DNA of 63,581 nucleotides, filler included, from Guillardia theta CCMP2712 (Eukaryota > Protista > Cryptophyta), in the NCBI RefSeq assembly GCF_000315625.1. It is 8 parts of 8 records of this genome, joined end to end, with 100 filler letters (N's around TTAATTAATTAA, not from the genome) between each part and the next. Parts side by side here need not be neighbours in the genome. Positions count along the whole stretch, not along the records: positions 28,401 to 45,569 come from NW_005434367.1; 7 more parts are not named here. One strand, written 5' to 3'. The translations under genes were made by a program, and so were the position numbers. Shown one piece after another: positions 7,174 through 45,569 of this stretch. The notes below the pieces were generated by a model. That model did no database searches. It was not told the DNA's origin and worked only from the letters and a program-made list of their open reading frames with translations. Position 1 is the first letter of the stretch. The number at the start of each line of letters is the position of its first letter.

Positions 7174-7228
<55 letters not shown>

Positions 7229-7312
7229 TTGTTCTTGCTCTTGCTCTTGCTCTTGCTCTTCCTCTTCCTCTTCTTCACTGCACGTGCATTCCTTTCAAAC
7301 AGCCGAAGGGGT

Positions 7313-12900: not shown

Positions 12901-13893
12901 ACTCGCCGGTGTAGCACCCAAGCTCCGCTTGCGTCTCCGAACCCTTGCCTGCTCTGAAACCGTTCATGAAGCTTCCCGTGTATCGACCTGCCCTCCGCCA
13001 CCCCGGCATGTTCTCGTTCAAGCTCCAGGACATATAACCCTGTCCATCATGCCTGCCGTTCTTCCAGTACCCCGAATACTTCTGCCCATTCCTCCACTGA
13101 TAGATCCCCCATCCATGAAACATGTCACCAGCCCAGTCTCCGTTGAACAGCTCCCCGTCTTCCCACTTGAACGTGCCTGTGCCCTCCCGCTCACCGTTCT
13201 TCATGCCCCCCTGATAGCTCCCGGCATGCTCAAACTTCACGCTCACCTGTGAGGTACTGCTGCTGGCAGATGCTTGCGAGGAAGGAGGAGAGCGAGGAAG
13301 CATCCGCTCGTGGCTGCTCCCCGAGCCATAGAACACATGCTGTCCCTACAACACCAGCAAAGTTAGATCAAGCGCTGCGCATGCTTGTAGCGCACCAGGT
13401 CGTTGCGAGGGGAGGCAACAGCAGAGGTGAAGTAGCTGACAGCTCCGTTGGTCTCCGTGCTGAAAGACCGAGGGGTTGTCGGTGAGACGGTGACGCTGAA
13501 GGCAGGGCGAGGATTGGAGCTCAAGTTGCGACTGTCGTGAGCAGCCTGTGATGGTGACTTCTGTTGCTGCTGCCTCCCGTTGTCCAGTTGCGACTTCACA
13601 GTCGCATGCGCATTCCCCTTGGTGCTCAGGTGCTCTGCTTCTCCTGGTGACCTATTCGTGTCATTGTTTCTGCTCTCCGCGTTCCCTCCTTTGCGCAAGG
13701 CGTCTACGTTGTTGGTATCGGCAGGAGAACTCGCCGCCTGCGGAGGGTCGGTGAGGGGAGGAGACCTTTCCTTCTTGGTGGGGAGGTCGCGGGTTTCTTC
13801 CTCTCTCGCGTCCTTGTCTCGCTCGTTGAGCTTCTTCGCCAGCTCCATTACCCGCACTCCTACCATCCGCGCCTCCTCCGATATCGCCACCAC
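9948..13893 (-). CDS. MORN-repeat + three-PDZ scaffold protein (four ORFs joined by short introns)
   Basis: MORN repeats (YQGGMKNGEREGTGTFKW, YSGYWKNGRHDGQG); PDZ domains (GTVGLKL..GSSADRS..DELLAVDG; GLGII..GGPAAKCG..GDSILAVD; VGMLL..GGLAD..GSQILSV); in-frame GT..CTRAC..YAG introns at ~13395-13346, ~12593-12540, ~10361-10284. Confidence 0.85.
11805..12275 (-). repeat. Coding tandem repeat, 24/21-bp units encoding KDPSSSL(F/Y)/TPGSLY
   Basis: Repeated gagggagctagacgggtccttg units; about 20 peptide repeats in the ORF. Confidence 0.9.
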
Positions 13894-14399
13894 CCCACCC
13901 TCCCTTCGTCTCGGAGCAATTACTGTGAGAACAACCTACCCCCTATGCTGAACGGACAATGAGTGGAGCCTATGGCCCTAGGACTCGTAGGTAGGGTCAT
14001 ACCCCACCCTACCCCAGGCTCACTTCCGGAAACTCTTGGGTCACCTACCCTACCTACGCCTCCGAGGCTCGTTGGTAGGGCCGAGCCCCTGGAACTTCCG
14101 ATGAGAGCCTACTACCCCCTACCCTACCCCTAGCCCCTCAGTACCCCCTACCCTACCCCCACAATGATCATGTCGGACGGTCACTACCCCCGGGACACCA
14201 TGTGGCTGCGCCGACTCGCAGTGAATCGCCGCCCGGGGGCCGGGCCACGCCGTCCGGGGCCAGCCGGGCCCGCGGTACGCACCGTGGCACGCGTGGTACT
14301 CCCCGGCTCAAACACCGCTGCCAGGGACATGTTGATCCTCGGTCTCGACGGCACAGCGGCAGGTACCCTCCAATCCTTGCATTACTGAAAGTTGGAGCG

Positions 14400-17300: not shown

Positions 17301-17770
17301 ACTGACAGCGGTCAGTCGGCTGCCTCCGGGTATTCGACGGCGTCAGTATGAGGGTGTTCACGTCCCCTGCTGTACGCCGAGGGATGAGGATGTTTACTCG
17401 CAGAAGGTAAAAGTGCCTCAAGCAGGATGAAAGCAGGAACAAGCTAAACCTGCATGCACAAAGCGCCACAGCGAGAAGCTGCACAAACAACACACAACAA
17501 AACAAGACCAAAACGGTGCTCGTTGCTTGCCCCTCTCTGCTGTCTACGTTGCTTCCCGCGTGGGCTGGCAGTGCTAGTAGGGTCTGGTTGCCAGCAGTGC
17601 AGTGCAGCTGGTTACTTTCGGTCTTATGTTTCGTGTGTTTGAGCCGCGTTTGTTGCTGTGTTCCGTACACTGCTTTTGTTGCTGTGTGCTCCAAATAGTA
17701 TGCCTGACGGTTTTGCTTGTTGCTGCTGTCTTCTGCTTGAGGCACTTTTTACCTTATGCGAGTAAAACTC
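14400..17770. mobile_element. Repeat mosaic (direct and inverted modules) around an RLE endonuclease ORF lacking reverse transcriptase; non-LTR (CRE/NeSL-like) derivative
   Basis: 14410-14650 repeats directly at 17210-17650; ~14710-15205 is inverted at ~15630-16200; 17393-17450 is inverted at 17700-17765. Confidence 0.65.
15744..17159 (-). CDS. CCHC zinc knuckle + restriction-like (PD-D/ExK) endonuclease of non-LTR retrotransposon type, no reverse transcriptase
   Basis: CDGC..HHLQTC..AHDNL (RHD-like), KGDI..DVTLVHP..AASEKIRKH, FIPLAISTDG, the motif order of CRE/R2-group C-termini. Confidence 0.75.
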   Translation of the reverse strand: MQTDLSHSPMRVSSYYPLKAFPHRYAQMLDCYLHGMPICQCPTECDGCQRELDPSVAAHHLQTCKRRSSKLPTAHDNLTRTIRSMLNEAGLQSVIDTVGDPRSRRQVPSHPHGRKMKGDIHIPGIRDRGSEQYEGLMADVTLVHPYIGSSADLTKWGEVNLDALHVAASEKIRKHRAAYAMTTPPRAFIPLAISTDGTLHPDTLRFIWYLADIIAQRSMPLEDAAFGRHFVPDDGPAAEVLARKRAATYQRLTMQLTLEALLSGARRMTPLRAQALLEPEDSSSSDFVESPEESSPEVSDSDGGHPSSGPDDRRGAGEASPSLTVTSGASGELDTTGVLAAGPSSPASSPASVGSRRSLGIAAASPPSRAATTDSATADSEASDSKSYGYYAARRTTSSGTVFLCPASLRPLPQADPRATPAPCRRLPFLRPRPPALWRQRTSRLTVVSRLPPGIASKGFYSSCMLLLLVA

Positions 17771-19267
17771 AGTGCCAGAAAGGTCGGGGTGCGCGGCGAG
17801 GTACTGTGAGTTTAGCCAGCGGTGGTGCAGTTCTCGAGGCGGCCAGGTGGACAGACAGGCTCTCGGAGATCACCGGGTCAAAGCGACGAATGATCTGTGA
17901 CTGGCCCGTGGACTCGCGAGAGAAACGGAGATGACCCCTGGAAGAAGCGAAGCTTCGCCGGCGGGCTGGAGATGGCTTGCCCTCACCAGCGTCCTCGTTG
18001 AGGGTATTGAAGACCTTTACTCTGATCGGACGGAGTTGACTGGCACTGCATGAAAACCACCGGTTGCCACGGTGCCCATCAGGAGCCTCGGGACCGAGGA
18101 TCCCCGACTATATCGCCGCTCAGCTACCGTACTGTCCGAGTAAGGTTCAACGGTTCAACGGTTCAACGGTTCAACGACGGTTGCCCGGGACTCATCACTG
18201 AGTCATGGCATGCGGCTGAGTGCGCCGGCGCAGCCTATCCCGGAGGACTGTGACGAACTTAGAAAGTGCCGCCTGACAGTGTGTGTTTGCGCGGCACACT
18301 GCCGCTGAGCTTTTATCGGGACGGTCCCCGGGGCCCCGGATCACATGATCGGATCGCGTGGCTGCAGTGGCGGCCCGGCAGTGCCCGGCAGCGCCGGGCG
18401 CGGCCCGGGCCGGGCCTCGCCGTCGTGCCCGGCCGCATGAGGGGATGAGGGGAGGGTAGCAAGCAGGCCATGCAGGGAGGGCGGGGCGCAGCGAGTGGAG
18501 TGTTGATGGTGGCAGCGTCATGCCTCATCAGTCAGAGAGATCCTCCTCCTCTCCTGCCCTTCCTTGCCTCTCGCCGTCTCTCCCCGCTTCCTCTTCTCTT
18601 CTTCCCCTCCCCTCCACATCTTCCTTGCCATAATCCGCGCTTCACCTTGCGGGGGGGCGACTCAGTGAGGCTTGAGCGGTGGTCTCATGCGATCTAAGGA
18701 GTCATGCAGGAGGAAAATGGATGGGAAGAAGTTAGCGAGGAGCAAGCGAATGAATTCTTAGTCGACGAAGACAACGAAGGGTGAACCCTCTTCGTCCCCA
18801 TCCCTCCCCTCGTCGCTCCTTACCAACGCTCTCTTCTCCTCCCGGAAGCTGATGTCGTTCTCGCCAGCTGGGCAGGAAGGTCGTTTGAGGGCAACATCCG
18901 ATACAAGGTGCTGGAGGACGTGAACGCGTCTCAGCCGGGTGGAGCAGGAAGGTGAAAGGTTGAGAGGAGAGGAGCAGCGATAATGCCGAGAGCGAAGGGG
19001 ATGGAAGAAGCCCAAGATGGGGGACCTGGTCGTCGTCACATGCAGGCGGCTTGATGAGGTAGAAGAAAGAGCGAAGAAGAACGGAGAGCTCTAGAGCTAT
19101 ACATCTTATAGCTCCAGAGCTGTGTAAGACAAGCGCCTGACGCTGGTCGCAGAAGTGCAAGGGAGAACATGAGGGACCTCGGGTGGTCCAGCTTGGCGCG
19201 GGAGTCTTGCACGAGTCGATTGAGAAGGAAGGAAGGAGGAAGGAGGAAGGGAGGGGAGGGAGGGAGG

Positions 19268-28400: not shown

Positions 28401-28474
28401 AGACGACTGCAGCTTCAGCCCCGCCTCAGACCCCTGGAGGCCCGCCAGGAGGCTAAGTGTCCGGAGATTGGCCG
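28401..28474 (+). repeat. Partial 332-bp satellite unit at contig start
   Basis: Matches satellite segment gactgcagc..tcagccccgcctcagacccc..ggagattggccg. Confidence 0.9.
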
Positions 28475-30323
28475 CATTCCATTGGGTTCTCGACTGGATT
28501 TGTTTGTAGCAGGCGAGCCTGTTTGTACCGAGGTATAATTGAGTTTTACCGGGTTCAAGGATTTTTGTATCAGGATCCCCTTTCCCCCTCCGTACTAAGT
28601 TTGTACTGTCAATGTCAGCAATTCCCGTGGGCTGGCAGTGCTCCCTCGACTATCACCTCTACACCACCGGTATGTTTCACAAGAGATCATGTCAGGGTAG
28701 GTAGTCTGATTTCAGGAGTGGGCGAGAATCATAAAAGTCTTGGGCATTCTGGTAGTGGAATTGACGCTGAAAAGCAATCTCTTCGATTACCGTTAGGATT
28801 CGAACGCGTGGTCAAACAGCACCCACCTGAGCTAGAGTCTTGTACTCGAGTGGGGTGGCTGATGTGGGTTTGAATCGCCACGCCTTTGACCCCATTATTT
28901 CCATTCCAAACCTCGTTGTCGCGTAGGGTGGGTCACACTCTCGAGCGTTGCGAGTTTTACGGTTCGAATTTGACCAAGGTTCACCCTCTAACCCCCAGTC
29001 TCTCAATTTCAAATGGGAAAATGATGGGTAGGGGGTCCCCCCATTTGTCTCCACTCCAGCCCCCCCCTCCCTCGACGAACAAGAGATGGTGAGATTGTCC
29101 CATTGACGCGCGTGAGGACGATAATGAACAATGTGAGACTTCGAATCCTACCATGCATGGATATGCAGGAAAAGAAGATACGGTTACCTGTCTATTTGTG
29201 ATGACTTGGTCTCTTCTGTGAAATTCAAGAAGTAGAAAGGGATTTGAACTCAACATCTCATCCTCAACATAAAGCCAATGCAACATCTCTTTCATTACCA
29301 CGCTGCCTCAAATTGCACTAAAACCACTTAGATCACTTAGCTTGGGCTGAAGATGATGTCAAAGTTGAGCAAATAATTCAAATTCTTGCACAATGACGAT
29401 TGATTGAAAATGTTCAAGTGTAATTTCAGAATGGACAGAAGATGGCATAGCAACAGCCGATCTCAGCATGTATTTCGAAACTGTGATTGTAAGCAAAAAC
29501 ATCATACGAAATAGTGTCCACCTTGTGTTTCTCTCTGTCTCATGGCCTACGGTATCATTCGTGGCACAACCCTATATGGCCAGTGAGTTGCATCAGGGAC
29601 ACTGTAGATGTGCTGATTGGACAATGGCAGGTACATGATATGGTTGGCGATATTCAGAGTTTTAAGAAGATAATCGTTTGTATCAGATGCTTGTTTCAGA
29701 CGTGTCGATATGAGATTGCTTTCTACACTGAAAATCACGGCTGTGAATCGTATCATCGTGTTACTGCGGCATTGCCAATGATGTTGATGAAGCATCTTTC
29801 ATGACAACCCGTGCAAATGCCATCTTATTCTCTCTGCAAATCCTTTCTCGCAATTGCTCCAACCATGCAAATTCAGGAAAATGTCTTGTACACTCCGAGA
29901 TAGTATTGGCATGTTTGACATCTAGGCTGTGATACCAGGGATCAAGCGATATATAGAGTAGGCAGAAGCTGTATCAGTCATGCAAACTTGAATCTGCATA
30001 ACAACAGTTTCTGAAGATTGTTTATTNNNNNNNNNNNNNNNNNNNNNNNNNNNNNNNNNNNNNNNNNNNNNNNNNNNNNNNNNNNNNNNNNNNNNNNNNN
30101 NNNNNNNNNNNNNNNNNNNNNNNNNNNNNNNNNNNNNNNNNNNNNNNNNNNNNNNNNNNNNNNNNNNNNNNNNNNNNNNNNNNNNNNNNNNNNNNNNNNN
30201 NNNNNNNNNNNNNNNNNNNNNNNNNNNNNNNNNNNNNNNNNNNNNNNNNNNNNNNNNNNNNNNNNNNNNNNNNNNNNNNNNNNNNNNNNNNNNNNNNNNN
30301 NNNNNNNNNNNNNNNNNNNNNNN

Positions 30324-30830
30324 TGACGATGAGTATGTGTAAACAATCACATCTGCTAAGCGTTGCTATTGATTGCCAAGCAGAAACACACTTACAACAA
30401 CCTGGAATAGATCATCCTTGTGGTTCTTGCAGGATCATCTTCATGATAGCGGATTCCACAACCAGGAGTTAAAAGAACCCTTAAGCCCAGGGTGCTATTT
30501 GTCCATTGAGCTTCAATCGAACTCTGAGGTCGAGATAGGAGGGAACTTTGAATCTCCAAGATCAGGGGTTCATGCAAAATGGAAGGTGGTACATCTTGAA
30601 AGTCAATGTTTTCAATGGAGGACATTTTATCTCCATTTCTTCTGGTCTCGATGCCTCACAACGCAGCTGATCGTGAGCTTATGCGTATTGCAACCCCAGG
30701 AAAACATCATCGTTGGCGCGACATGCGTGCCCGACCCATTGCGTCTGATTACAAAATGTAAGGATCTGATTTGACATATCCGAAATATTTGGACATAATT
30801 TGAAATTTGAAGGGTATGTTTGTTTATTTG
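30324..30830 (-). pseudogene. Degenerate partial duplicate of the 5' end of the partner gene (copy of ~35150-35630)
   Basis: Near-identical MSSIENIDFQDVPPSILHEPLILEIQSSLL..RYHEDDPARTTR, then frameshift and stop. Confidence 0.8.
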
Positions 30831-31140
30831 CCTGAACTGTTCGTTTGTTTGTTTGTCTCTTCTGTATGTCTGTTTGTCTGTCTGTTCTGTGTATGTGTGT
30901 TTGTCTGTTGCTGTTCGTTTGTTTGTTTGTCTCTTCTGTATGTCTGTTTGTCTGTCTGTTCTGTGTATGTGTGTTTGTCTGTTGCTGTTCGTTTGTTTGT
31001 TTGTCTCTTCTGTATGTGTGTTTGTCTGCGTGAGCAAAACACAGTTTTTTTGTTTTGCTCACTACCCCTGCTTGTCTCTTCTGTATGTGTGTTTGTCTGC
31101 GTGAGCAAAACACAGTTTTTTGTTTTGCTCACTACCCCTG
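30815..31140. repeat. GT-rich tandem repeats (~74-bp and ~71-bp units); the latter carry 12-bp-stem hairpins
   Basis: GTGAGCAAAACA..TGTTTTGCTCAC at 31030-31062 and 31101-31132. Confidence 0.8.
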
Positions 31141-31508
31141 CAGAGTCAGTGAAACCCTACGACCATGCAGCAACACCCCCAAAAACACAAGTTGAACGTG
31201 GGGTGCGCTTATTATCATATGAAAAGGGGGTAGGTAGTGGGAACACAGCCCCTTTTCTGATCAAACCTCAAACACAAAACGTAGTACCTACCCATTCACT
31301 CCGGCCTACCCTACCAAATATCATGATAAATCGGTATAAAGTGTAGGTAGGGGTAGTTTTCCACCGTGTTCAGGGGTGGGGGTTATATCCCTACTATATT
31401 ACAACCTGTGCAATTGTTCTCTACCATGTGTGGAAATATTCCATGTCAAGGGCTCAACATTTGTTCTAAAATTTCATACTTGAACTGTAAAGTCGAGACC
31501 AAGCTGAA

Positions 31509-34307
31509 ATGTTCAATCAAATTGCGGAATCATTAGCAACAAATAGTAGTTTTCCCGGACAAAATCCACCCACTGATTGCCATTTTTCTCGCAACGTGTT
31601 CTCTCTACCGCAGTGCAAATGTCGTGTGGAAGATTTCAATCCTTTTCATCCATGTTGTTACCGCCGCCCTTTGGATGGCTACGACATGCAGCGAATTGTT
31701 CAAGCTTATCCTGTTCGAAGTATGGACAGCTACACGATGGCATTCCTACAAGGCTTGAATCCAACACCTTATCGTCGTGTCAACTACGATGAAGCTACCT
31801 GGAGGGGACTTGAACATTTTGCATTGCTGGAAGGCTTCATGGAGAAAACTTCTGATAAGCCTGATGTTGCTTCTTTCTTGTACTACGTTGCAAACGGATA
31901 TCTTTTTTCGCCATCGTCTGTTGTTGGAAGTACTCTGCAAGGCTACTTCAATTGCGCGAGTCGGTTGGCACACTTGAGTGCAGAATATGAAAAACTCAAA
32001 AGTGAGCATCAGCGCATGAAAGATGCAATTCCCAACATTGACAAGGTTCTAAATTTGACATTTGAGGACATTTGGAAAGCAAATTTCCCTCAGGAGATAT
32101 GCCCGGCAAATCTGGAAGACATTTCCAATGATTCTGCAGACAAAAAGCTAAGAATTCTCAAGGACATTCTTGCTGAAATAACTCCCACCTCCAATTTGCT
32201 CTCTGGAGGTCTGCAACGCATGACAGGCTTGAATGGAAGTGGCAAAGCTTTCGGCCATCTCAGTGATCTACGTCAAAGTTCCGATTCACTGTTTCACCTG
32301 GAGTCGTTTATGAATGGTTTTGCACAATCTGCATCTTTTCATTTGAAAAAGCATGCCAAGACCAACAAGAGGATAAAGAAAGCGTTGCAAAAAATGTACA
32401 ACTCTGTTTGTGCGAGAATAGACGAGCTTTCTCTTATGACTTTGCAAAATGGACTGACTCACAAGGCGTTGGACGATCTTCACAAAATGATGAAGGAAAG
32501 TGGGCTTCAAGTTATGCACAGTCCTACGGAAATCAGCAGGACGAAGGCCAAGCAAAAAAGATTAGTAGAAGAAAAGGTTGATGGAATAGTCGAGCTTCCT
32601 GGGGGCCATGGAGCAAATCTTATCAAAGTGACGGAATTGTTTTTCATGAAGCTTGTGCAGTCGACACCAGAATTGATGTCGGTCAAAGGATTGAAGTTGT
32701 CCACCTGCTTCGATAGCGTCCGACTAGGCTGTTCAGCTCAGTCAGGAACAGAGCATACAGACTTTGCAATGAATTTGATTGGAGTCTGGGATGATGCCGT
32801 GCAGTTTGCAGACTGTTTTTTCGATCAAGAAACAAGATTAAATTCTCCTGCATCGTATGTCACATTTTTACTGATCTATTTGCAAGATTCAATTGAAAAT
32901 ATCAAGGCAAATCTTTGGGATGAATATGGACTTGACTTGAAGGCATTCTTAGGCGAACTGATCTGTGCGGATGGAAGGAAGATAGCTGCTGGGCTGCATT
33001 TTTACAGGGACGACAATGGAAATTTGACGTGCATCGATGGTCGGAAACGGTCCATGAGTGACCCTGCTGCTCATCCTGAGCTCATCATTCCCCTCTCAAT
33101 TGAATTTCGTGGCGACCTCAAGGGCTTGTGGCATCTTGTCGGCATGAAAGGTAATTGCTGATAGCATGGTTGCCTCAGTGTCCTTTCTAAACGTCATTTT
33201 CGCATAGGTGCCAAGGGAGATCAATGCTGCTTGTACTGCCATGTAAAATCAGCTGAGCGTCATCTCATCTTCGATATCGCGGAGGTTCCTGAGGACATCA
33301 CTGTCGATGATTTCTGCAAGGAAAGAGCAATTCCAGCAGATGTGTTCTGGTTGGTTCACGAAGTGCTAACCAATGGAGGGCAATGCAGTATCGTACATCA
33401 ATGCATGTTCGGTGGAAAATGTTTGAGCAAGGCAGACGTGTCTAAGCTGAATGTGTCAAAAAGGAGCAAGACACTGAAACGTGGGCAGAAGGTGGTCGTA
33501 CTGAAGCAGGATCACGGAATGGAAAGAGAACATGAGGTTTTGAAAGAACATGGACTTGATTGCAAAAGCCTTGTCATTTGTGTTCTCCATCTCAAATTGC
33601 GGATTGTATACTGTGTCCTCAAGTGTGTATACAAAACAGCTCAACGAAAGCACCGAACTAAACAAGCTCAAAGCATTTTACACAAGTCTGGAATCAAGTA
33701 TAAGTTGGAAGAAAACAATGGGAAGCTTCCTAACTTGACAGGCAAACAGTGCGACGATTTGTTGAACCGAGCTATGGGACCCCTACTCGACCTCCTTTAT
33801 GATGATGTTGATGAGCGAAATAGATACACTGAGATCTACAAAGAGTTGTCATCCGTACTTTCGACATTGTCTTGTACGCATGTTTCCCATCTTACCGATG
33901 AAGACATTGGTACATTAGCGACGAGGATCAATTCATTCGTTATCAGATACGTCGTAGAATGCGGCGATAAGGAACTCTTCAGTGCTGTGTATTTTCACTT
34001 TTTATCTGCCGGACATGTCGCAGAATTATTCCACTATCATCTTTCAGAACGAAACGTTACTTTGGGTGCTCTGAGCATGTCAAGTTTGGAACTAAGGCAC
34101 AGAATTTGCGGACGACCTGCTTGGAGAAAAGGATTGATGGAAGGCAATGCAGCAGCAGGTAGAAAACGATCTCATGAAAACATGACCGAGGATCATGTAG
34201 ATACAGCGACTCTGCAGCAAATGTCTAGGAATATGAGCAATTTTTTTGCATTCAGAAATTTGCTAACGTCAGGATTAGGAACGATTGTAAATTTGTACTA
34301 CTCTTAG
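31509..34307 (+). CDS. RAG1/Transib/Chapaev-like DDE transposase, 2 exons (31509-33150, 33208-34307), ~913 aa
   Basis: 57-nt GT-AG intron joins the ORFs in frame (EFRGDLKGLWHLVGMKGAKGDQCCLYC); motifs STCFD, GDLK..G..CxxC, CVLHLKLRI, LTGKQCDDLL, YFHFLSAGHV, LGALSMSSLELRHR parallel RAG1 ESCDG, YDEK..CTLC, DALHCDIG, MNGNFARKL, YFHKTLAHV, IGAWASEGNESGNK. Confidence 0.8.
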
Positions 34308-34322
34308 TTCAGTGCCCATGAT

Positions 34323-35576
34323 TTATAACACTCTCTGTTGCCTCTTTTTCTTGTCTCGCCAATCAACCCATTGGATCTTGCCCATCATGCCACCAATGCT
34401 ACCGACTGTTTCAAAACCCACGGACATATTCCCCCGTTTGTACGACAAATACATCGGTCCGCCCACAAACATTTGTGTCAGATTTTCTTGAAGCTTCGGT
34501 GTCGACTTGAAAGGGATATCTAACACTTCTCTGAAAGCTTTATCTTGAACGATGTTCTCTGCAAATATCCATGTGAATTGTGATTTGTTCCTCTTCGCCT
34601 TGACATGTTTGAAAAGACGAGGTGGAATTAAACGAAGCAAACTCCTCATTGAAATATTCTTGCAAGTAAAGTCAAGATCTTGTGTGCCTGCTTTCTTGAA
34701 TGTACGACTCCTGGCTGTGAGCCATAGCTGCATGCTGTTCTTAATCTCTTCGATGTCTGAGACTGTCTTGAGGTAACCGGATGGTGTGAGCACTGAAGCT
34801 TCGATGCTGGAAGATACTATCTTCTTAATTGTTTGTTCAGGGTCTTGCAATTTGAAGTACGAAATCTCACAATAGGGCTTTCGACGATTGTAGTTGTCTT
34901 CATTGAAGAAAATGTACCCTACAACATCGATAATCCTTGATTGCGGTGCTTGAGACGACATAGAATCAAGAAGGAATGGATACTGAATAGTTAGCACATC
35001 CTGAATCAGGTCCAGGTCCACTTCTTCCGTGTACACTGATTGGAAGCATGTTCTCGCATTCATCGACCTCACAATCTGCCTCATGGACTTGTTTTGTAAG
35101 CCATGCTTTGAAATATTTGCATCAACTTTGTCCAAAAGATTCTTGTCATACAACATGAAAATCTCCACCCTGCAATCGGAAACCAAACGTTTGATTATAC
35201 CGTACCTTGTGGTTCTTGCAGGATCATCTTCATGATAGCGGATTCCACAACCAGGAGTTAAAAGAACCCGTAAGCCCAGGGTGCTATTTGTCCATTGAGC
35301 TTCAATCGAACTCTGAGGTTGAGATAGGAGGGAACTTTGAATCTCCAAGATCAGGGGTTCATGCAAAATGGAAGGTGGTACATCTTGAAAGTCAATGTTT
35401 TCAATGGAGGACATTTTATCTCCATTTCTTCTGGTCTCGATGCCTCTCAACGCAGCTGATCGTTGGCGCGACATGTGCCCGTCAACAGCGCCAAGGCCCG
35501 TCGCCGTGAATAATTTATGCGTGTTTTGCCAAACCCATTGCGTCTGATTACAAAATGTAAGGATCTGATTTGACAT
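34323..35576 (-). CDS. Transposon partner protein convergent with the transposase, possible divergent BAH domain (start uncertain)
   Basis: Intact ORF of ~360-420 aa; stop codon 15 bp from the transposase stop; homolog at 42846-43898. Confidence 0.7.
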   Translation of the reverse strand: MSNQILTFCNQTQWVWQNTHKLFTATGLGAVDGHMSRQRSAALRGIETRRNGDKMSSIENIDFQDVPPSILHEPLILEIQSSLLSQPQSSIEAQWTNSTLGLRVLLTPGCGIRYHEDDPARTTRYGIIKRLVSDCRVEIFMLYDKNLLDKVDANISKHGLQNKSMRQIVRSMNARTCFQSVYTEEVDLDLIQDVLTIQYPFLLDSMSSQAPQSRIIDVVGYIFFNEDNYNRRKPYCEISYFKLQDPEQTIKKIVSSSIEASVLTPSGYLKTVSDIEEIKNSMQLWLTARSRTFKKAGTQDLDFTCKNISMRSLLRLIPPRLFKHVKAKRNKSQFTWIFAENIVQDKAFREVLDIPFKSTPKLQENLTQMFVGGPMYLSYKRGNMSVGFETVGSIGGMMGKIQWVDWRDKKKRQQRVL

Positions 35577-35619
35577 ATCCAAAATATTTGGGAGCACTTT
35601 GAAATTTGCCAGGGGGTGT

Positions 35620-37518
35620 ATGTCTGCTTATCCCAACAAAACAATGCATTGGCAGAAAACAGACGAGGAACGATCTGCGCAGTTGGAGGTCAATCGAAGA
35701 AGAAAACGGGAGAGGAGGGCCCGCGAAACAGAGGAAGAACGATCTGCGCGGTTAGCAAGCCAACGAAGGAGACAATCGGAGAGGAGGGCCCGCGAAACAG
35801 AGGAAGAACGATCTGCGCGGTTAGCAAGCCAACGAAGGAGACAATCGGAGAGGAGGGCCCGCGAAACAGAGGAAGAACGATGTGCGCGGTTAGCAAGCCA
35901 ACGAAGGAGACAATCGGAGAGGAGGCAGAGGGCCCGCGAAACAGAGGAAGAACGATCGGCAAGTATGGAAACTCTGCGAAACCGCAAGCGCAGAAGTCGG
36001 AGTGCTGTTTACAATGTGTATCAAGAGGCTGCACACAAGAAAATTTCAATACGAGAAGAGCTGATGATCTACCCAGTGGACATGCGGTTTCTCAATGAAG
36101 TAGAAAAGCAGTTTGATTTAACAAGAATGGTTGGCTCGGGGACTTTCGGGGAGGTCTATGAGGCCTACGACAGGTTAAATGATCGTCGAGTAGCAATCAA
36201 ACGATTATTACCATTTCAAACCATGGATGCGCATAAGAAGGAAGCAAACTTTATATCAAGCTTGCATGGAAAATCCAACATTGTACAGCGTGTGCAAAGT
36301 CCGCCACTGGCGCCTAATGGGATAATCCTTGTCGAGGAGCAGCAGGCTTTGATTTTTGAATACTTCGAACATGACAGTCCCTCAGATTACGTCAAAGATT
36401 TGACCATCAAAGAGATTACCCACTACATGAAGAATTTGTTTGTAGCATTGAGGTCTGTACATGCCCTCGGGATCATACATCGAGACGTGAAATTGAATAA
36501 CTTCCTCTACGACAGAAGGAACAAGAAGTACTTGCTTGTGGACTTTGGGCTGGCAGAGAAGAAAATGCAGAAGACTGCTCTGGGAATTTCCACAGGACAA
36601 ACGCCTTCACCAGGCCGCAGAACAACGTCAGGGTCAATGAGCAAGTATTTCCCTGCCACGAAGAGCAACGGCTACATCTTGCCCTCTGAGAACCTGGCGC
36701 AGCAGATTGCAAAGAGGCGAAGGTTGGGCGTCAGAAGGACGAACGCATCGGAGACCGTGAGGAACTCAGGGGTCAAACTGAAACGGCTTCCAGTCAACCG
36801 CGGGGGAACCCGGGGCTACCGCGCGCCCGAAGTGCTCATGGGCAGCCACCACCAGACGAAAGCAGTGGACGTCTGGAGCGCTGGGGTGATACTGCTTACC
36901 CTGCTGTGCCGGCAGACACACTGCTTCCAGTGGTTCCGGCATGACAATGACAACTTGGCGGTCATGGAGATCTACGGGTACGCCCGTTGTGTAAGCCTTG
37001 AAGTAAGTGCGCTGGTCTGACTGTATGGTCTGAACAGCTTGCGCATGTACATCAAGAGCATGGACGCTGAGTTCCAGCACAACTATGGGTATACGGGTCA
37101 GTACAGGGATAAGATCAGAGATGTCATCGAAGATTTCAAGCTCGACGTTGAAGTAAAATTGTTGTCGTTGTTGCTGCTGTTGTTGTATCATGAGGATGAG
37201 GATGAGGATGAGGATGAGGATGAAGATGAGGATGAGGGTGATATGGTGGCGGGACTCTTAAGCTGGGGATGCTAACTTCATGTCATTCAGTTCGGACCAT
37301 TGGAACAGTATCTCAGCTATGCCCGCGGTTTGGAGCAAACATGGCGGACCTTATCAAGCGCCCTGAGCGAGGATGCGGGATGCAAGGGCTGGCTGGAGGT
37401 GGAGGAGAAACATGCGATCTGGGACTTCCTCAACCGCTGCCTCGACATCGATCCCCGCACGAGGATGACTGCAGAGGAGGCTCTGAAGCATCCCTTCCTC
37501 GCTAGTGGTCTTGAGTAA
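35620..37518 (+). CDS. CDC7-like Ser/Thr kinase with N-terminal 23-aa STPR-like repeats (introns 36978-37037, 37153-37290)
   Basis: GSGTFGEVY, VAIKRL, HRDVKLNNFLYDRRNKKYLLVDFGLAE, long insert, NRGGTRGYRAPEVL..HQTKAVDVWSAGVILL, RMTAEEALKHPF, all characteristic of CDC7. Confidence 0.8.
35656..35960 (+). repeat. 69-bp coding tandem repeat (ETEEERSARLASQRRRQSERRAR), about 4.5 copies
   Basis: Directly visible; unit is 23 aa. Confidence 0.9.
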
Positions 37519-38590
37519 ACCGTCTCTCCTCTGGCATCTCCCAGTCTCTCGCGATCAGCATATCATCGCAGTGACCTCCCAGGCTTCTCTTTCCCTTCCA
37601 ACCCCTACTCTCCCATCTCCTTCCCACCTCCCCTGTCCCCTCCTCTCTCCTCCCTCAGCCTCACAAACTCCAATGACATGTTATAATCGCCATCCCACTG
37701 GCTGTTGAGAGCATTTCACAAGACTCAAACTGTTGTGGAATGCATTGGGAGAAGCCTCAAAAAATGCAATCATGGCAAAGCACCAGCAAGTCTCTTGAAA
37801 TATGTTTCATATACAACCGACGAAGCATTCTGGTACAGGAAGCTAGGCCGTCATCGCAATAAGGAGAATAGCATTTCCTTCATGTCTTCGAAGGTTGCCT
37901 CTCTGATCGATTCCTTTCATGTTTCCCTTCTGAAAGTGTGAAAACAGCTGATCAGGGCTTTGGCACATCAGAATTGAGGTGTTTCAGTGCAAGTATGACA
38001 AGGAAAGTCACACAATTATTGGATAGCGTGAGCATGCAAATTTGAATGCATACCTTACACTATTACAAGTCAATGCACAGTTACAACTATGCTCACAATG
38101 CTTCAAAGCATATTTGCATTTACACGCAACTCAACGAACTGAGATTCAAATATTTCCTTTCCACAAAATTCTTATTGCAACATGATATGCATCATCCTCA
38201 AAACACTCTGCTTAAAGGAAATGCAGTCGTTTTCCCACATGATACATTCAAATCTGGTCAAATTTGGCATCAAAAGATGTTCTTGTCATCACATTGATGT
38301 ATGTATCTCACAACATGGTGCCCACAGGGCGCGATCTGCTTGAACGTGAGTCTCCGAAACTGACATAGTGTTCAACATTGGTACATTCGGTACAACGTTT
38401 AAAAATTCCAGAAATGGCACGGTGCTGGCAGGATCCCACAATTTGAAATGGCGTGGTTTGACAGAAGTAAAACATTTCAAGGAAAATTTTCACTTTGAAA
38501 TCCAAAACCTATTCATTAAGAAAAATCCAGGTAGAAAAAGACCCCGCCGAGACGGAATAAAATCCAGTTGAGAACCCAATGGAATGGGGC

Positions 38591-38817
38591 CTGACCGGTC
38601 ACGGCCGCCCGGAGAGATCAGGCCCCCGGCCAATCTCCGGACACTTAGCCTCCTGGCGGGCCTCCAGGGGGTCTGAGGCGGGGCTGAAGGCTGCAGTCGG
38701 TCTACTGACGGGCCCGGCCGGCAGGATCCGTCGAGAAACAGGGGGGTCAACTTCAAGGGAGGTTTTCTTCCCCCTGGGAGAAATGTCCTATGGGTTTTTG
38801 GATCTGCGATATAAAAC
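38591..38817 (-). repeat. Inverted partial satellite unit
   Basis: Reverse complement of the 332-bp unit, abutting the right TIR of element 1. Confidence 0.9.
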
Positions 38818-41586
38818 TGTTTCTCGACGATCCTGCCGGCCGGGCCCGTCAGTAGACCGACTGCAGCCTTCAGCCCTGCCTCAGACCCCAGGAGATTGGC
38901 CGGGGGCCTGATCTCTCCGGGCGGCCGTGACCGGTCAGCGGACCGTGTCAGCAGGCCCGTGACATGTCAGCCGGCTGACAGGGGCCGTGACCCGGCTGAC
39001 AGGCTCACCTGACCGGTCACGTGACACATCACGTGACCGAGACAAGACTTTTTTATATCGCAGATCCAAAAACCCATAGGACATTTCTCCCAGGGGGAAG
39101 AAAACCTCCCTTGACCCCCCTGTTTCTCGACGGATCCTGCCGGCCGGGCCCGTCAGTAGACCGACTGCAGCCTTCAGCCCCGCCTCAGACCCCCTGGAGG
39201 CCCGCCAGGAGGCTAAGTGTCCGGAGATTGGCCGGGGGCCTGATCTCTCCGGGCGGCCGTGACCGGTCAGCGGACCGTGTCAGCAGGCCCGTGACATGTC
39301 AGCCGGCTGACAGGGGCCGTGACCCGGCTGACAGGCTCACCTGACCGGTCACGTGACACATCACGTGACCGAGACAAGACTTTTTTATATCGCAGATCCA
39401 AAAACCCATAGGACATTTCTCCCAGGGGGAAGAAAACCTCCCTTGACCCCCCTGTTTCTCGACGGATCCTGCCGGCCGGGCCCGTCAGTAGACCGACTGC
39501 AGCCTTCAGCCCCGCCTCAGACCCCCTGGAGGCCCGCCAGGAGGCTAAGTGTCCGGAGATTGGCCGGGGGCCTGATCTCTCCGGGCGGCCGTGACCGGTC
39601 AGCGGACCGTGTCAGCAGGCCCGTGACATGTCAGCCGGCTGACAGGGGCCGTGACCCGGCTGACAGGCTCACCTGACCGGTCACGTGACACATCACGTGA
39701 CCGAGACAAGACTTTTTTATATCGCAGATCCAAAAACCCATAGGACATTTCTCCCAGGGGGAAGAAAACCTCCCTTGACCCCCCTGTTTCTCGACGGATC
39801 CTGCCGGCCGGGCCCGTCAGTAGACCGACTGCAGCCTTCAGCCCCGCCTCAGACCCCCTGGAGGCCCGCCAGGAGGCTAAGTGTCCGGAGATTGGCCGGG
39901 GGCCTGATCTCTCCGGGCGGCCGTGACCGGTCAGCGGACCGTGTCAGCAGGCCCGTGACATGTCAGCCGGCTGACAGGGGCCGTGACCCGGCTGACAGGC
40001 TCACCTGACCGGTCACGTGACACATCACGTGACCGAGACAAGACTTTTTTATATCGCAGATCCAAAAACCCATAGGACATTTCTCCCAGGGGGAAGAAAA
40101 CCTCCCTTGACCCCCCTGTTTCTCGACGGATCCTGCCGGCCGGGCCGGTCAGTAGACCGACTGCAGCCTTCAGCCCCGCCTCAGACCCCCTGGAGGCCCG
40201 CCAGGAGGCTAAGTGTCCGGAGATTGGCCGGGGGCCTGATCTCTCCGGGCGGCCGTGACCGGTCAGCGGACCGTGTCAGCAGGCCCGTGACATGTCAGCC
40301 GGCTGACAGGGGCCGTGACCCGGCTGACAGGCTCACCTGACCGGTCACGTGACACATCACGTGACCGAGACAAGACTTTTTTATATCGCAGATCCAAAAA
40401 CCCATAGGACATTTCTCCCAGGGGGAAGAAAACCTCCCTTGACCCCCCTGTTTCTCGACGGATCCTGCCGGCCGGGCCCGTCAGTAGACCGACTGCAGCC
40501 TTCAGCCCCGCCTCAGACCCCCTGGAGGCCCGCCAGGAGGCTAAGTGTCCGGAGATTGCCCGGGGGCCTGATCTCTCCGGGCGGCCGTGACCGGTCAGCG
40601 GACCGTGTCAGCAGGCCCGTGACATGTCAGCCGGCTGACAGGGGCCGTGACCCGGCTGACAGGCTCACCTGACCGGTCACGTGACACATCACGTGACCGA
40701 GACAAGACTTTTTTATATCGCAGATCCAAAAACCATAGGACATTTCTCCCAGGGGGAAGAAAACCTCCCTTGACCCCCCTGTTTCTCGACGGATCCTGCC
40801 GGCCGGGCCCGTCAGTAGACCGACTGCAGCCTTCAGCCCCGCCTCAGACCCCCTGGAGGCCCGCCAGGAGGCTAAGTGTCCGGAGATTGGCCGGGGGCCT
40901 GATCTCTCCGGGCGGCCGTGACCGGTCAGCGGACCGTGTCAGCAGGCCCGTGACATGTCAGCCGGCTGACAGGGGCCGTGACCCGGCTGACAGGCTCAGC
41001 TGACCGGTCACGTGACACATCACGTGACCGAGACAAGACTTTTTTATATCGCAGATCCAAAAACCCATAGGACATTTCTCCCAGGGGGAAGAAAACCTCC
41101 CTTGACCCCCCTGTTTCTCGACGGATCCTGCCGGCCGGGCCCGTCAGTAGACCGACTGCAGCCTTCAGCCCCGCCTCAGACCCCCTGGAGGCCCGCCAGG
41201 AGGCTAAGTGTCCGGAGATTGGCCGGGGGCCCGATCTCTCCGGGCGGCCGTGACCGGTCAGCGGACCGTGTCAGCAGGCCCGTGACATGTCAGCCGGCTG
41301 ACAGGGGCCGTGACCCGGCTGACAGGCTCACCTGACCGGTCACGTGACACATCACGTGACCGAGACAAGACTTTTTTATATCGCAGATCCAAAAACCCAT
41401 AGGACATTTCTCCCAGGGGGAAGAAAACCTCCCTTGACCCCCCTGTTTCTCGACGGATCCTGCCGGCCGGGCCCGTCAGTAGACCGACTGCAGCCTTCAG
41501 CCCCGCCTCAGACCCCCTGGAGGCCCGCCAGGAGGCTAAGTGTCCGGAGATTGGCCGGGGGCCCGATCTCTCCGGGCGGCCGTGAC
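38818..41586 (+). repeat. 332-bp tandem satellite, about 8 near-identical units
   Basis: Same sequence recurs at 39021, 39353, 39685, 40017, 40349, 40681, 41012, 41344. Confidence 0.97.
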
Positions 41587-41925
41587 CATGCCGTTCACAA
41601 GGTCATATGCAGGCTCTAGCAAAATTGGTCTTTTTTTTTCTCCTTGGGAAGGGGTTCATATATACACTTCCATTCAGCTACCCCGGTTTTTTCTCTCGAA
41701 ATTCAAACCAAATTCAAAACCGTGATTAAAAGTGATTTTTGGAAGTTTAGCTTATCGTTTCTTGGGTACCTTCTAAAATGTTTTAANNNNNNNNNNNNNN
41801 NNNNNNNNNNNNNNNNNNNNNNNNNNNNNNNNNNNNNNNNNNNNNNNNNNNNNNNNNNNNNNNNNNNNNNNNNNNNNNNNNNNNNNTTGAAACGTAAGGG
41901 TTCAATCAGGGGCCTCAGACCCCCT

Positions 41926-44543
41926 CATTCCATGGCATTTTCTAATGCTCGCTTTTGATCATTTTCGAGCGGGGTACTTCAGCCCAGGATTTTTGAATGG
42001 TCGGCGCACTGAAAATTTGTACCAGAAACTTCGATAATGGTTGAAAGTATGTTTGAATCGGGGACCGTGTCGAGCAGTTTTAGGTTTACAAGTATTCTTG
42101 CTTCCTCCAAACAACAAGGTTTCAAACATTAAAACTATTTTTGACCTTACACGCTTTTACACGCCTGGGGGGTGCATATACAACCAAATTGCCTGCCCTC
42201 CCCCTTCCCCCATTGCTGCATCCGCACCCGCCGGCGCAGGCGGCGTTTGTTTGAATCCCAGATGGCTCTCAGCCAATGGCTCTTTCATCGTATTCAAGCT
42301 CCAGGCCATCCAAGGTTGGATCATGTGTGAATGTTTGTACTTTTTGCGGCATACTGCAAGACGACGTTTCAAACAGCTCGAGCTTGTTTTTCAAAGGAAG
42401 CTGTAGGAATCAGCATCGCCATGGATTCCAGAGCCTAGGGCTGTTTTCGAATCCATTTGATGCTCATTGCAAGATGGAGAATTGCTCGTTTTTGGTGATC
42501 AAGCATCCACAACCCTCTTTCGTATGATTGAGCTTCGAGCACATCTCTGACTGTAGAGTTGTTTGGTGTCAAGATTGTTTCTCGTAAAGGATCTCTCTGA
42601 TTAGGCAATTGATTGTTGTTTTGATTGGCATTCTACAAGACCCATACTTCCTCCTCTCTGTGTCAACCAAGCACATAAGCATAAGGCATGTCAGTCGTGT
42701 AGGCAACTTGATTGCAAATAGATCGCAAGTGTAAGATCGATGAACTATTCAACGCCATGAATGCCGGATGTGAATGAACTTCCCTCAGGACTTCTCAGTA
42801 TCGGAACCAGCGAGCTAAGACATAAGGTAGAGTCTCCATTGAATATCATTCCTGCGAATGTAATGTTTTTATCAGTTGTGGGGAAGAGAAGCATGGAGAC
42901 AAGCGGGTGCCCAAGCGAATAAGAACATCTTGCGGATGTAGGTTTGGACAAAGACGGCGCCGATTCCGAGGTTGTGAAACAGGCAGCGAAAAGATGCTGA
43001 GGTTTTCGGAGTTCATAAACATGGCTTGTGACGAGCATGTCACACGTAAAGCGATGGAAAACAACAAACAAAAATTGTAAAGCAATCGAAAGCAACGAAA
43101 ATCAATGGAAAACAACAAACAAAAATTCTTCTCAAAGGTCTCACTCCTTGACATCAACCACTGATCGAACATCTTTTTGACCTCGGTCATATCTCGACAA
43201 ATCCGATTGTACTCCGCCGCTGAACAGAAAGTTGTTTGCGCCATCTTTTCAACGAGTGGTGCCGGGTTTGCAATCGAGAAGTGAGAGATTTTACAGTATT
43301 TATTATTTTCGATGTCGTCTTCATGAAAAAATATATACCCATGCACTCTGAAATTATCGTGGAGATCATCGTTGGCATGCTCCAACATGCAAGGAAAGCT
43401 GAAGAAACACATTTTTGGTATAGCATTTATTTCATCCGTATCCTTGTAAATTGCTTGATAACAATCACGGTTTCCAACTTTGTTCAAAATTCTTTTCAGG
43501 GCCACACAGGGCACTCGATTAGTTATAATGGTTTCGTCTACATGTTCCAAGAGGACTCCATTGTACATGATGTACACTTCGACAACCTGTGCATCTGAGT
43601 GCAGCGATTTGATCATGCCCAGTCGATTCACTTCAACGCCCCTGTGATCTTCACACTGATATTGAACCCCTGTGCCAGGCTCAAGCATAATATTCAAATT
43701 ACTGCCTGGCTTTTTCCAGTACATCCTGGGCAAGTCTCGATCATCAACTGACGTATGCAGGATCATTCGAAGCTTCAAATCTTCAGGTGTCTTTGACTCA
43801 TCACAAGTCTCTTCCTGCTCCAAGAATGTATCGAAATCTTCCTGCCTTCGCCTTCTCTGAATTCCATTTGTTGCTGATACACGACGGTGAAGATTCATTT
43901 GTTTGGTGTCTATAACTGGAGCGCAAGGGAAAGGGAAGCAACGGGGAGGGAGGGGAGCAGGGGGGAGGGAGGGAGCAGGGAGGAAGGGAGGGGAGCAGAG
44001 AGGGAGGGAGGGAGGGAGAAGAGCAGGAAGGAGGAGGGGAGGGATACTTGCAATGGGGATCTCAGGATTTTAATGAAAATTATTTGCTCTTTGATCGGGG
44101 GCAAGGGGACCTGTGTTTCGGTGGCACCCTATAGACATGGGGTAGGTATCTATATAAAACAACCGGTGTAGAAAAAAAAGATTGCCGTTGCTAGCTGGCA
44201 TACGACTCCTTAATTTGAAAACAAAAATACTTATTGGCTAGATTTACTACACTCGTCAATGGCTGACACTAATAAGATTTCATGAGCGTGTATCGAAATA
44301 TACGAATAACCCTACCCCCTCCATATCAGACAAACATACCGGTACACAGGGAAGAGAGCAGCCAAGAGGCGTGTAAGCCGGAACTCAAATGCTTAAAACA
44401 AATATAAAACAGTACTGAGTGGTACAAATCATTCTGGTACAAAATTGACTAAAAACTGTATGCTTATGATCAAATTAACAGGTACAAGTGTTTGTTAAAA
44501 GGATATTAATTTATAATTGGGCATTAGTAAATGCCATGGAATG
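41926..44543. mobile_element. 2.6-kb non-autonomous TIR element (element 2) carrying a partner-gene paralog
   Basis: CATTCCATGGCATTTTCTAATGCTC (41926-41950) vs reverse complement of 44519-44543, 23/25 identical; same CATTCCAT terminus as element 1; satellite sequence on both flanks. Confidence 0.8.
42745..43898 (-). CDS. Paralog of the element-1 partner protein; C-terminus probably frameshifted by a short internal duplication
   Basis: LEPGTGVQY..RLGMIKSL..VEVYIMY..CYQAIY..VHGYIFFHED..YCKISHF..QWLMSRSETFEK aligns with LTPGCGIRY..RYGIIKRL..VEIFMLY..CFQSVY..VVGYIFFNED..YCEISYF..LWLTARSRTFKK; NFCLLFSI is duplicated. Confidence 0.75.
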
Positions 44544-45569
44544 GGGGCCTGATCTCTCCGGGCGGCCGTGACCGGTCAGCGGACCGTGTCAGCAGGCCCG
44601 TGACATGTCAGCCGGCTGACAGGGGCCGTGACCCGGCTGACAGGCTCACCTGACCGGTCACGTGACACATCACGTGACCGAGACAAGACTTTTTTATATC
44701 GCAGATCCAAAAACCCATAGGACATTTCTCCCAGGGGGAAGAAAACCTCCCTTGACCCCCCTGTTTCTCGACGGATCCTGCCGGCCGGGCCCGTCAGTAG
44801 ACCGACTGCAGCCTTCAGCCCCGCCTCAGACCCCCTGGAGGCCCGCCAGGAGGCTAAGTGTCCGGAGATTGGCCGGGGGCCTGATCTCTCCGGGCGGCCG
44901 TGACCGGTCAGCGGACCGTGTCAGCAGGCCCGTGACATGTCAGCCGGCTGACAGGGGCCGTGACCCGGCTGACAGGCTCACCTGACCGGTCACGTGACAC
45001 ATCACGTGACCGAGACAAGACTTTTTTATATCGCAGATCCAAAAACCCATAGGACATTTCTCCCAGGGGGAAGAAAACCTCCCTTGACCCCCCTGTTTCT
45101 CGACGGATCCTGCCGGCCGGGCCCGTCAGTAGACCGACTGCAGCCTTCAGCCCCGCCTCAGACCCCCTGGAGGCCCGCCAGGAGGCTAAGTGTCCGGAGA
45201 TGGGCCCGATCTCTCCGGGCGGCCGTGACCGGTCAGCGGACCGTGTCAGCAGGCCCGTGACATGTCAGCCGGCTGACAGGGGCCGTGACCCGGCTGACAG
45301 GCTCACCTGACCGGTCACGTGACACATCACGTGACCGAGACAAGACTTTTTTATATCGCAGATCCAAAAACCCATAGGACAATTTCTCCAGGGGGAAAGA
45401 AACCTCCCTTCACCCCCCTGGTTTCTCGACGATCCTGCCGGCCGGGCCCGTCAGTAGACCGACTGCAGCCTTCAGCCCCGCCTCAGACCCCCTGGAGGCC
45501 CGCCAGGAGGCTAAGTGTCCGAGATTGGCCGGGGCCTGATCTCTCTGGCGCCGTGACCGGTCAGCGGAC
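44544..45569 (+). repeat. 332-bp satellite, about 3 units running into contig end
   Basis: Units at 44662, 44994, 45319. Confidence 0.95.

Follow-up and report, generated by a model that had tools for sequence, protein, structure and literature searches.

The kinase gene and its locus

The window analyzed here is a stretch of 63,581 nucleotides (filler included) from the cryptophyte alga Guillardia theta CCMP2712, of which the part beginning at window position 28401 (record position 1) is scaffold JH993271.1, positions 1-17169 (assembly GCA_000315625.1). On this scaffold lies a DNA transposon bounded by terminal inverted repeats (TIRs), hereafter element 1, which harbors genes for a predicted RAG1-like transposase, a partner protein with a predicted BAH-like N-terminal domain and a CDC7-like kinase with N-terminal STPR-like repeats (Table 1). 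The kinase gene is the subject of this study. The DNA of the locus is eukaryotic nuclear in character, with short introns, two N gaps in the scaffold (29978-30346 and 41787-41886) and arrays of a 332-bp GC-rich satellite.

A sequence-only reading of 35620-37518 had described this gene as a captured CDC7-like kinase with all main kinase motifs intact, fused to about 4.5 copies of a 69-bp repeat encoding a 23-residue STPR-like unit, containing a microsatellite intron, and lying inside a transposon head-to-head with a partner gene. The gene is real and the observation is confirmed, with a correction to the number of exons. It begins with the ATG at 35620, ends with a TAA stop codon at 37516-37518 and encodes a product of 566 residues; the open reading frame (ORF) from this ATG can be read unspliced up to 37020. 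A 1458-nt transcript contig (L002; JGI sample 3300017164) matches the window over 35893-36977 with 99.9% identity, then jumps to 37038-37152 and from there to 37291-37527, and since both junctions are seen in this transcript we assign three exons to the gene. The (ATGAGG)8.7 microsatellite at 37190-37241 does lie inside an intron as proposed, but the transcript reveals two introns instead of one. The only GT..AG span fitting a one-intron description, 37003-37290, is not used in the transcript; it skips the 38-codon middle exon. L002 has an open reading frame already at its first base, this frame runs through the last STPR unit, and the repeats thus belong to the message. The GenBank annotation, in turn, is a 312-aa single-exon piece (36082-37020) without the repeats and the last two exons. 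Expression, which the sequence-only reading had proposed to check, is backed by a matching spliced transcript, the last exon of which is only ~95% identical to either genomic copy.

Table 1. Features of the locus and related sequences (window positions unless another sequence is named).
Feature	Position	Strand	Remarks
Element 1	28475-38586	.	10.1-kb TIR-bounded DNA transposon; predicted RAG1-like transposase, BAH-like partner, STPR-CDC7-like kinase
Left TIR, element 1	28475-28501	+	27 nt, 5'-CATTCCATTGGGTTCTCGACTGGATTT
Right TIR, element 1	38560-38586	-	One mismatch to left TIR
Duplicate of partner 5' end and partner-kinase intergenic region	30392-30823	.	Copy of 35205-35623, upstream of transposase gene
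Transposase gene GUITHDRAFT_149260 (P0124)	31509-34307	+	816 aa as annotated; predicted RAG1/Transib fold
Partner gene	34323-35414	-	Convergent with transposase gene (stop codons 16 bp apart), head-to-head with kinase gene; predicted BAH-like N-terminal domain
Divergent intergenic region, partner/kinase	35415-35619	.	205 bp; presumed bidirectional promoter
Kinase exon 1	35620-36977	+	Start codon, STPR-like repeats, linker, kinase subdomains up to ...MEIYG
STPR-like repeat array	35657-35957	+	Tandem Repeats Finder: period 69, 4.3 copies, 89% matches; encodes 23-aa unit
Kinase intron 1	36978-37037	+	GT..AG, 60 nt; junctions from transcript L002
Kinase exon 2	37038-37152	+	115 nt, 38 codons; absent from GenBank model and from sequence-only reading
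Kinase intron 2	37153-37290	+	GT..AG, 138 nt; holds (ATGAGG)n microsatellite 37190-37241
Kinase exon 3	37291-37518	+	C-terminal kinase subdomains and stop codon
Satellite beside element 1	38591-41587	.	332-bp GC-rich unit; one inverted monomer (38591-38890), then ~8 direct copies
Element 2	41926-44543	.	2.6-kb relative, TIR 5'-CATTCCATGGCATTT; only a partner paralogue (42846-43898, minus); no transposase, no kinase
Transposase relatives	L010 9499-12372; L011 8001-10537; L012 8001-10667		Same gene family
Partner relatives	L010 12361-13533; L011 10599-11933; L012 10699-11841; window 42846-43898		Convergent with RAG1-fold gene as in RAG1L/RAG2L layout, except in element 2 (no transposase)

Affinity of the kinase domain to CDC7

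Exons were searched singly, and P0001 (418 aa, translated from L002) was used in place of the spliced kinase for whole-domain comparisons. The Pfam Pkinase family matches exon 1 with an E-value of 7.6e-35 and the last exon with 7.8e-5, and the catalytic motifs GSGTFG, VAIK, HRDVKLNN, DFGLA, GTRGYRAPE and DVWSAG are all present. Against the PDB, P0001 matches human CDC7 best (E-value 1.6e-41, 146 bits) and by a wide margin, followed by yeast Cdc7 (2.6e-33), the next family being CK2 alpha (1.2e-24, 90 bits); exon 1 alone gives the same order of families, with CDC7 ahead. In a search of 5.8 billion proteins for relatives of the kinase, every named match outside its own family is a CDC7 among the best 120 of 569 matches. 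The segment from DFG to GTRGYRAPE is 88 residues long, a trait of CDC7, and the large inserts of the kinase alignment fall at the CDC7 positions (between subdomains VII and VIII, and X and XI). The long DFG-APE insert is shared with human CDC7 (PDB identifiers 4F99 and 6YA7) and yeast Cdc7 (PDB identifier 7P5Z), as are the motifs GT.G.RAPEVL and, at the C-terminus, LD.(D/N)P..R.TAEEAL.HPF. The kinase is nevertheless divergent: its identity to other CDC7s is 31-38%, its glycine loop reads GSGTFGEV instead of GEGTFSSV, and it has an 8-residue insertion in the N-lobe and a further insertion encoded by exon 2. Also unlike CDC7s, it has Leu in place of the catalytic-loop Pro and N-terminal STPR repeats, and it is multi-copy and transposon-borne.

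A maximum-likelihood tree unites the copies from Guillardia and Hanusia with a marine-metagenome protein (P0006) in a clade with support values of 98/92 and a long stem, which stands apart from the animal, fungal and amoebozoan CDC7s and yet groups with the CDC7 set. Nearly all comparators in this tree are opisthokonts and a single TKL-like kinase is the sole outgroup, so that it cannot separate a fast-evolving orthologue from a paralogue. The copy in the window has the shortest terminal branch of its clade, and the Hanusia protein groups with the GUITHDRAFT_116856 type. By these sequence comparisons, the kinase represents a divergent CDC7 lineage, which to date is known solely from Guillardia, Hanusia and a small number of marine metagenome contigs. 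P0006/P0153 (ENA and TARA marine metagenomes) is a distant member of the clade, with Leu in the catalytic loop (HNDIKLSN) and a basic N-terminal region in which no clear STPR units are found, and its position indicates that the lineage extends beyond Guillardia and Hanusia. A scan of viral contigs did not find relatives of the kinase, and a metagenome scan with the kinase did not yield any contig beyond the one found before.

STPR-like repeats at the N-terminus

Tandem repeat detection gives nearly the number of 69-bp copies stated in the sequence-only reading (Table 1) and the same 23-residue unit. This unit (ETEEERSAR...) is rich in basic residues and has Glu1, Thr2, Arg6, Arg9, Leu10 and Arg20 in the register of FMBP-1 of Bombyx mori. 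Glu1, Thr/Ser2 and Arg9 are the conserved residues of the STPR, whereas Arg6, Leu10 and Arg20 have also been named as hallmark or DNA-contacting residues in FMBP-1 (PMC4856987); Glu1, Thr2 and Arg9 are all present in the unit described here. A phmmer search with the N-terminal 143 residues against the whole PDB found the STPR domain of FMBP-1 (PDB identifier 5D23) as the sole significant match, with an E-value of 5.8e-4 and an alignment in register over 86 residues; Syf2 was found with an E-value of 2.2. The kinase shares with FMBP-1 and with ZNF821-type proteins the strict 23-residue period, the abundance of basic residues and the presence of about four tandem units. It differs from FMBP-1 in that Tyr16 is replaced by Arg and the hydrophobic base-contacting residues (Met13, Ser14, Ala17 and Leu21) are mostly replaced by Arg, Gln or Ser. 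We refer to these repeats as STPR-like because the repeat pattern is that of the STPR while the score against the Pfam family stays below its cut-off. STPR proteins have been reported mainly from animals (PMC4856987), unlike the repeats described here, which are fused to a kinase in a protist. Degenerate STPR units are also present at the N-terminus of the paralogue GUITHDRAFT_116856 and of the metagenome contig L005, and the fusion of STPR and kinase is thus older than the split of these copies.

The carrier transposon

The 27-nt TIRs of element 1 begin with CATTCCATTGG, starting with CATTCC, and are related to those of element 2, which begin with CATTCCATGG. They look bipartite (CATTC ... 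CTGGA[A/T]TT). Identical termini, CATTCCAT(T)GG, adjoin unrelated flanks in the window and in three independent metagenome contigs (L005, L007 and L008). Homology to these contigs ends exactly at the termini, outside of which lie satellite in the window, GC-rich non-satellite DNA in L008 (a left terminus whose flank is other than that of the window), G-rich DNA in L005 and unique DNA in L007. Units of ~5 kb with TIRs of the same type are found on two more G. theta scaffolds, L010 (CATTCCGTTCC...) and L012 (CATTCTGGGG...). The termini are thus seen at different sites in the window, L005, L007, L008, L010 and L012, as would be expected of a mobile element, and the kinase gene lies, as the sequence-only reading had it, inside a TIR-bounded unit. 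These observations also bear on the possibility that the transposon is an artefact of assembly or of satellite rearrangement, its inverted repeats being satellite-junction sequence. The N gaps in the scaffold, the opposite orientations of the satellite on the two sides of element 1 and the failure to find a target-site duplication would fit such an artefact, but the same termini lie beside non-satellite DNA in the three metagenome contigs and on two further G. theta scaffolds, the window contains the pattern CATTCCATNGNNTT 4 times where 0.5 occurrences are expected, and the enclosed gene has a predicted transposase fold; we regard this explanation as extremely unlikely.

The satellite is also present at 28401-28474 and 44544-45569, such that both elements are embedded in it, and the inverted monomer beside element 1 means that the two flanks of this element are inverted relative to each other. 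Element 2 is probably a non-autonomous derivative; its ORF appears to run into non-coding sequence past ~codon 258, and L007 holds a relative that is 88% identical but differently flanked. The duplicate at 30392-30823 is 87% identical to 35205-35623 and spans the first ~70 codons of the partner gene, the 205-bp intergenic region and the ATG of the kinase gene. Only a (TGTT)n-rich 74-bp repeat separates this duplicate from the transposase gene, which may hence use a copy of the kinase promoter. On L010, the kinase-free element of 5.1 kb lies between the arms of a 1.3-kb, 97% identical inverted duplication (6906-8239 and 16946-18279), which carry unrelated TKL-like kinase genes. A TTGGCCGGG-like motif is common to the satellite and the flanks of the L010 element and might point to a preferred target.

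The transposase and its partner

The transposase gene comprises two ORFs in the same frame (31509-33161 and 33231-34307), with a short intron near 33153-33209. No Pfam family matched the transposase or any of 15 of its relatives, a profile search against PDB sequences gave no match, and the protein Atlas did not contain a match to the transposase or the partner. An exhaustive HMMER search identified only 19 relatives, of which those traced are from Guillardia theta, Hanusia phi and metagenome contigs; members annotated as hypothetical include GUITHDRAFT_149260, 145307, 110778, 162260, 110480 and 122885, in addition to transcripts of Hanusia phi. The fold search alone succeeded. An AlphaFold (AF2) model built on the 15 relatives has an overall model confidence (pLDDT) of 72, with core residues 290-780 mostly above 80. 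Foldseek matches this model to RAG1 with an E-value of 2e-10. There are 49 matches with E-values of at most 0.001, and the 48 of them that are listed are all RAG1, BbRAGL or HzTransib. VIA-align Z-scores are 17.3 for RAG1 (over 422 residues), 16.2 for BbRAGL and 16.1 for HzTransib, followed by 9.6 for the P element as the next family and 5.9 for Hermes. The residues D343, D401, C499, C613, H616, H752, H758 and E783 are at least 85% conserved in the family, and D477, within FRGDLKG, was identified by visual inspection of the alignment. The spacing of the acidic and Cys/His residues appears to resemble that of the catalytic and zinc-binding residues of RAG1, and the acidic residues are presumably catalytic. 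The model suggests that the protein folds as a RAG1/Transib-type DDE transposase, and the family looks like a cryptophyte branch of the RAG1/Transib superfamily that lies beyond the reach of sequence searches.

The carrier element thus resembles Transib and the RAG-like transposons (ProtoRAG, AanRAGL) in the predicted RAG1-core fold of its transposase over ~420 aligned residues and in its bipartite TIRs, and ProtoRAG in having a second gene convergent with the transposase gene (PMC9435367, PMC10462144). It differs from them in the absence of detectable sequence similarity, in TIRs that start with CATTC instead of CAC, in that no 5-bp target-site duplication was found, in a BAH-like partner in place of a RAG2-type Kelch propeller with PHD, and in the kinase cargo gene. 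The one protist known to have RAG-like transposons is Aureococcus (PMC9435367).

The partner ORF spans 34323-35597 on the minus strand, with a likely ATG at 35414; the 205 bp between this and the kinase ATG agree with the head-to-head arrangement with at most ~200 bp between candidate starts proposed earlier. The convergent pair of transposase and partner genes recurs in L010, L011, L012 and L014, down to 23-29% identity, which makes the partner a core gene of this element family. No Pfam family, zf-DBF included, matched the partner. Its model has an overall pLDDT of 48.7, with residues 40-145 reaching 63-85 and low confidence outside this stretch; the C-terminal half is without an assigned fold. 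For this domain, the top 50 Foldseek matches are all BAH domains with E-values of ~1e-6 (Sir3, Orc1, ORC1, DNMT1, polybromo, EBS/SHL), and VIA-align gives Z-scores of 8-10.2 to BAH domains over residues 28-190. Judging from the modeled fold, the N-terminal domain of the partner is likely BAH-like and not RAG2-like. In the RAGL elements (RAG1L and RAG2L), the second gene encodes a RAG2-type Kelch propeller with or without a PHD, whereas the modeled domain of the partner here matches BAH domains only. Its identification as a RAG2-like Kelch propeller or as a Dbf4-like activator was rejected on the basis of this fold and its presence in elements that do not carry the kinase.

Copies of the kinase and its status as cargo

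The elements on L010 and L012 are of the form TIR-transposase-partner-TIR and do not carry a CDC7-like gene. Since these sister elements keep the transposase and the partner without the kinase, the kinase is a cargo gene, in agreement with its earlier description as captured. In element 1, the kinase gene and ~400 bp of its 3' flank sit between the start of the partner gene and the right TIR, and this 3' flank is also present in the solo copies L001 and L003. Another copy of the kinase-bearing element is found in L014 (scaffold JH993353.1), which is 99.0-99.9% identical with a different right junction; over the kinase gene, it is 99.7% identical to the window copy and the 312-aa core is identical. 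The metagenome contig L005, of the element 2 subfamily, has on a single strand a terminus, partner 2, the STPR and the kinase, the latter two ORFs being separated by frameshifts. Between the two subfamilies, the partners are ~30% identical and the kinases ~80%, which indicates that the kinase entered these elements, by acquisition or exchange, well after their divergence. The paralogues in CCMP2712 are incomplete: GUITHDRAFT_116856 (P0005/L001) is without the C-lobe and GUITHDRAFT_107937 (P0085/L003) is a C-terminal half. In L001 (10001-11503), two degenerate STPR units precede a 24-residue unit (MACDESLDQEGAHKDMSLTKGNNG) that is present in five copies, and an internal deletion removes the C-lobe of the kinase. 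A metagenome relative (L004/P0003) is full length, minus two residues of the APE motif. The sequence-only reading had also suggested counting the copies and their association with TIRs. This association holds for element 1 and L014, which are TIR-type elements, and for L005, where the kinase occurs together with a terminus, but not for L001 and L003, which lack TIRs within 10 kb.

Pack-MULEs, CACTA elements and Helitrons are gene-capturing DNA transposons. The element described here is like them in that a host-type gene with introns lies between the element genes and the terminus and that some of its copies decay; it is unlike them in that its cargo is an entire gene with matching spliced transcripts, has lost none of the catalytic motifs and recurs in two element subfamilies. 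The kinase could accordingly be a captured copy heading for decay, as are most Pack-MULE and Helitron captures, and be transcribed beside an element promoter without having any function. The broken relatives (the deletion in L001, the truncation in L003, the frameshifts between STPR and kinase in L005 and the two missing APE-motif residues in P0003) speak for this, as do the relaxed ratio of nonsynonymous to synonymous substitution rates (dN/dS) and the 89-100% similarity of the STPR repeats, which indicates a recent expansion. The frame of 566 codons, however, runs unbroken through the three exons, the splice sites are canonical and none of the catalytic motifs is missing, the pairwise dN/dS of the kinase domain (0.3-0.55, at dS of 0.03-0.6 and ~0.22-0.30 for most pairs) is clearly below 1, the window and L014 copies agree over the gene and its core as given above, and the branch of the window copy is the shortest in the clade. 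We consider such decay improbable.

The kinase could also be the cryptophyte's own divergent CDC7, i.e., the catalytic subunit of DDK, which serves in ordinary origin firing and is merely enclosed by transposon and satellite DNA. Among the best 120 of 569 matches, P0005, P0085 and P0002 are the only CDC7-like proteins of G. theta and Hanusia, and the intact copies among those seen are the two element-borne ones; furthermore, the window copy evolves slowest in the tree, lacks none of the catalytic motifs and is matched by spliced transcripts. A canonical CDC7 may, however, lie outside the best 120 of 569 matches and the 8000 candidates to which this search extended. Precisely bounded TIRs enclose the gene in two near-identical copies, a different element subfamily carries it too, the DNA-binding-type STPR N-terminus and the Leu in place of the conserved Pro are unusual for DDK, and the dN/dS values are high for an essential replication kinase. 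We consider this alternative unlikely.

Interpretation and implications

We favor the reading, with a probability of about 0.6, that the kinase gene is a cargo gene of a cut-and-paste transposon, which combines STPR-type repeats and a complete CDC7-family Ser/Thr kinase domain and is carried by RAG1/Transib and BAH-like machinery. With respect to the interpretation given in the sequence-only reading, the CDC7 type, the STPR-like repeats, the TIR-bounded element and the capture are borne out, whereas formal membership of the repeats in the Pfam family is not.

Several observations weigh against the cargo reading. Pfam STPRs (PF21107) aligns end to end with the repeats but with 16.9 bits against a cut-off of 27 (E-value 0.0088), and the phmmer match to FMBP-1 involves a region of strong compositional bias. 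The Pro of the CDC7 catalytic loop (HRDVKPxN) is Leu in this lineage, such that the signature HRD(V/I)KPxNF is absent: the loop reads HRDVKLNNF in P0001-P0004 (the copies having the loop) and HNDIKLSNI in P0006, while in 34 other matches that were checked it is HRD(V/I)KPxNF in 33 and HRDLKPNNF in P0040, with Pro in 34/34. The last exon of L002 (1201-1437, corresponding to window 37291-37527) is ~95% identical to all genomic copies seen, against more than 99% for exons 1-2, and judging from these identities it may come from a further unassembled copy, another strain or a chimeric transcript assembly. The TIRs, beginning with CATTC(C/T), do not have the CAC heptamer of Transib and RAG, and a target-site duplication (TSD) was sought at four elements but none was consistent, nor was a 5-bp TSD found. 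Within 10 kb of the kinase copies in L001 and L003 there is neither a TIR nor a partner or transposase gene, and L014 may represent the same locus, as an allele or through redundant assembly, instead of a second insertion. Lastly, dN/dS values of 0.3-0.55 are higher than an essential kinase would be expected to show.

DDK acts on MCM, on heterochromatin proteins and in cohesin loading, and BAH domains read nucleosomes. If the cargo reading holds, the STPR repeats, being basic, helical and of a DNA-binding type, would hold an active kinase on DNA or chromatin. The tethered kinase would then act near the element or the satellite on DDK-type substrates, viz., replication, heterochromatin or cohesion factors, and a benefit to the element or the host would keep this copy intact. 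By analogy with DDK, it is plausible that the kinase might couple transposition or local replication to the element or the satellite, as the sequence-only reading had conjectured. A bolder version, which we put forward as a speculation with little chance of being right, is that the element is a chromatin and replication toolkit, in which a RAG1-fold transposase, an ORC1/Sir3-type BAH reader and a DNA-tethered DDK-like kinase would aim at satellite heterochromatin and time cut-and-paste transposition to local replication; a related notion is that the only working CDC7 of G. theta rides on a transposon.

A literature search did not find any report linking Transib or CDC7 with Guillardia, and gave nothing useful on Cdc7/Dbf4 in Guillardia or cryptophytes. 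For three G. theta genes, the present results amend the public gene models. RAG1 is the enzyme behind the rearrangement of antibody genes in vertebrates, and the carrier element points to a cryptophyte family of transposases of predicted RAG1/Transib fold that is invisible to sequence searches. The combination of such a transposase with a second gene that resembles a chromatin reader and is convergent with it, as in RAG1/RAG2, bears on how often Transib-type transposases have recruited chromatin-binding partners. Should the kinase prove active and work on behalf of the element, we would be dealing with a DNA transposon equipped with a cell-cycle-type kinase of its own, which STPR repeats direct to DNA; to our knowledge, no such DNA transposon is known.

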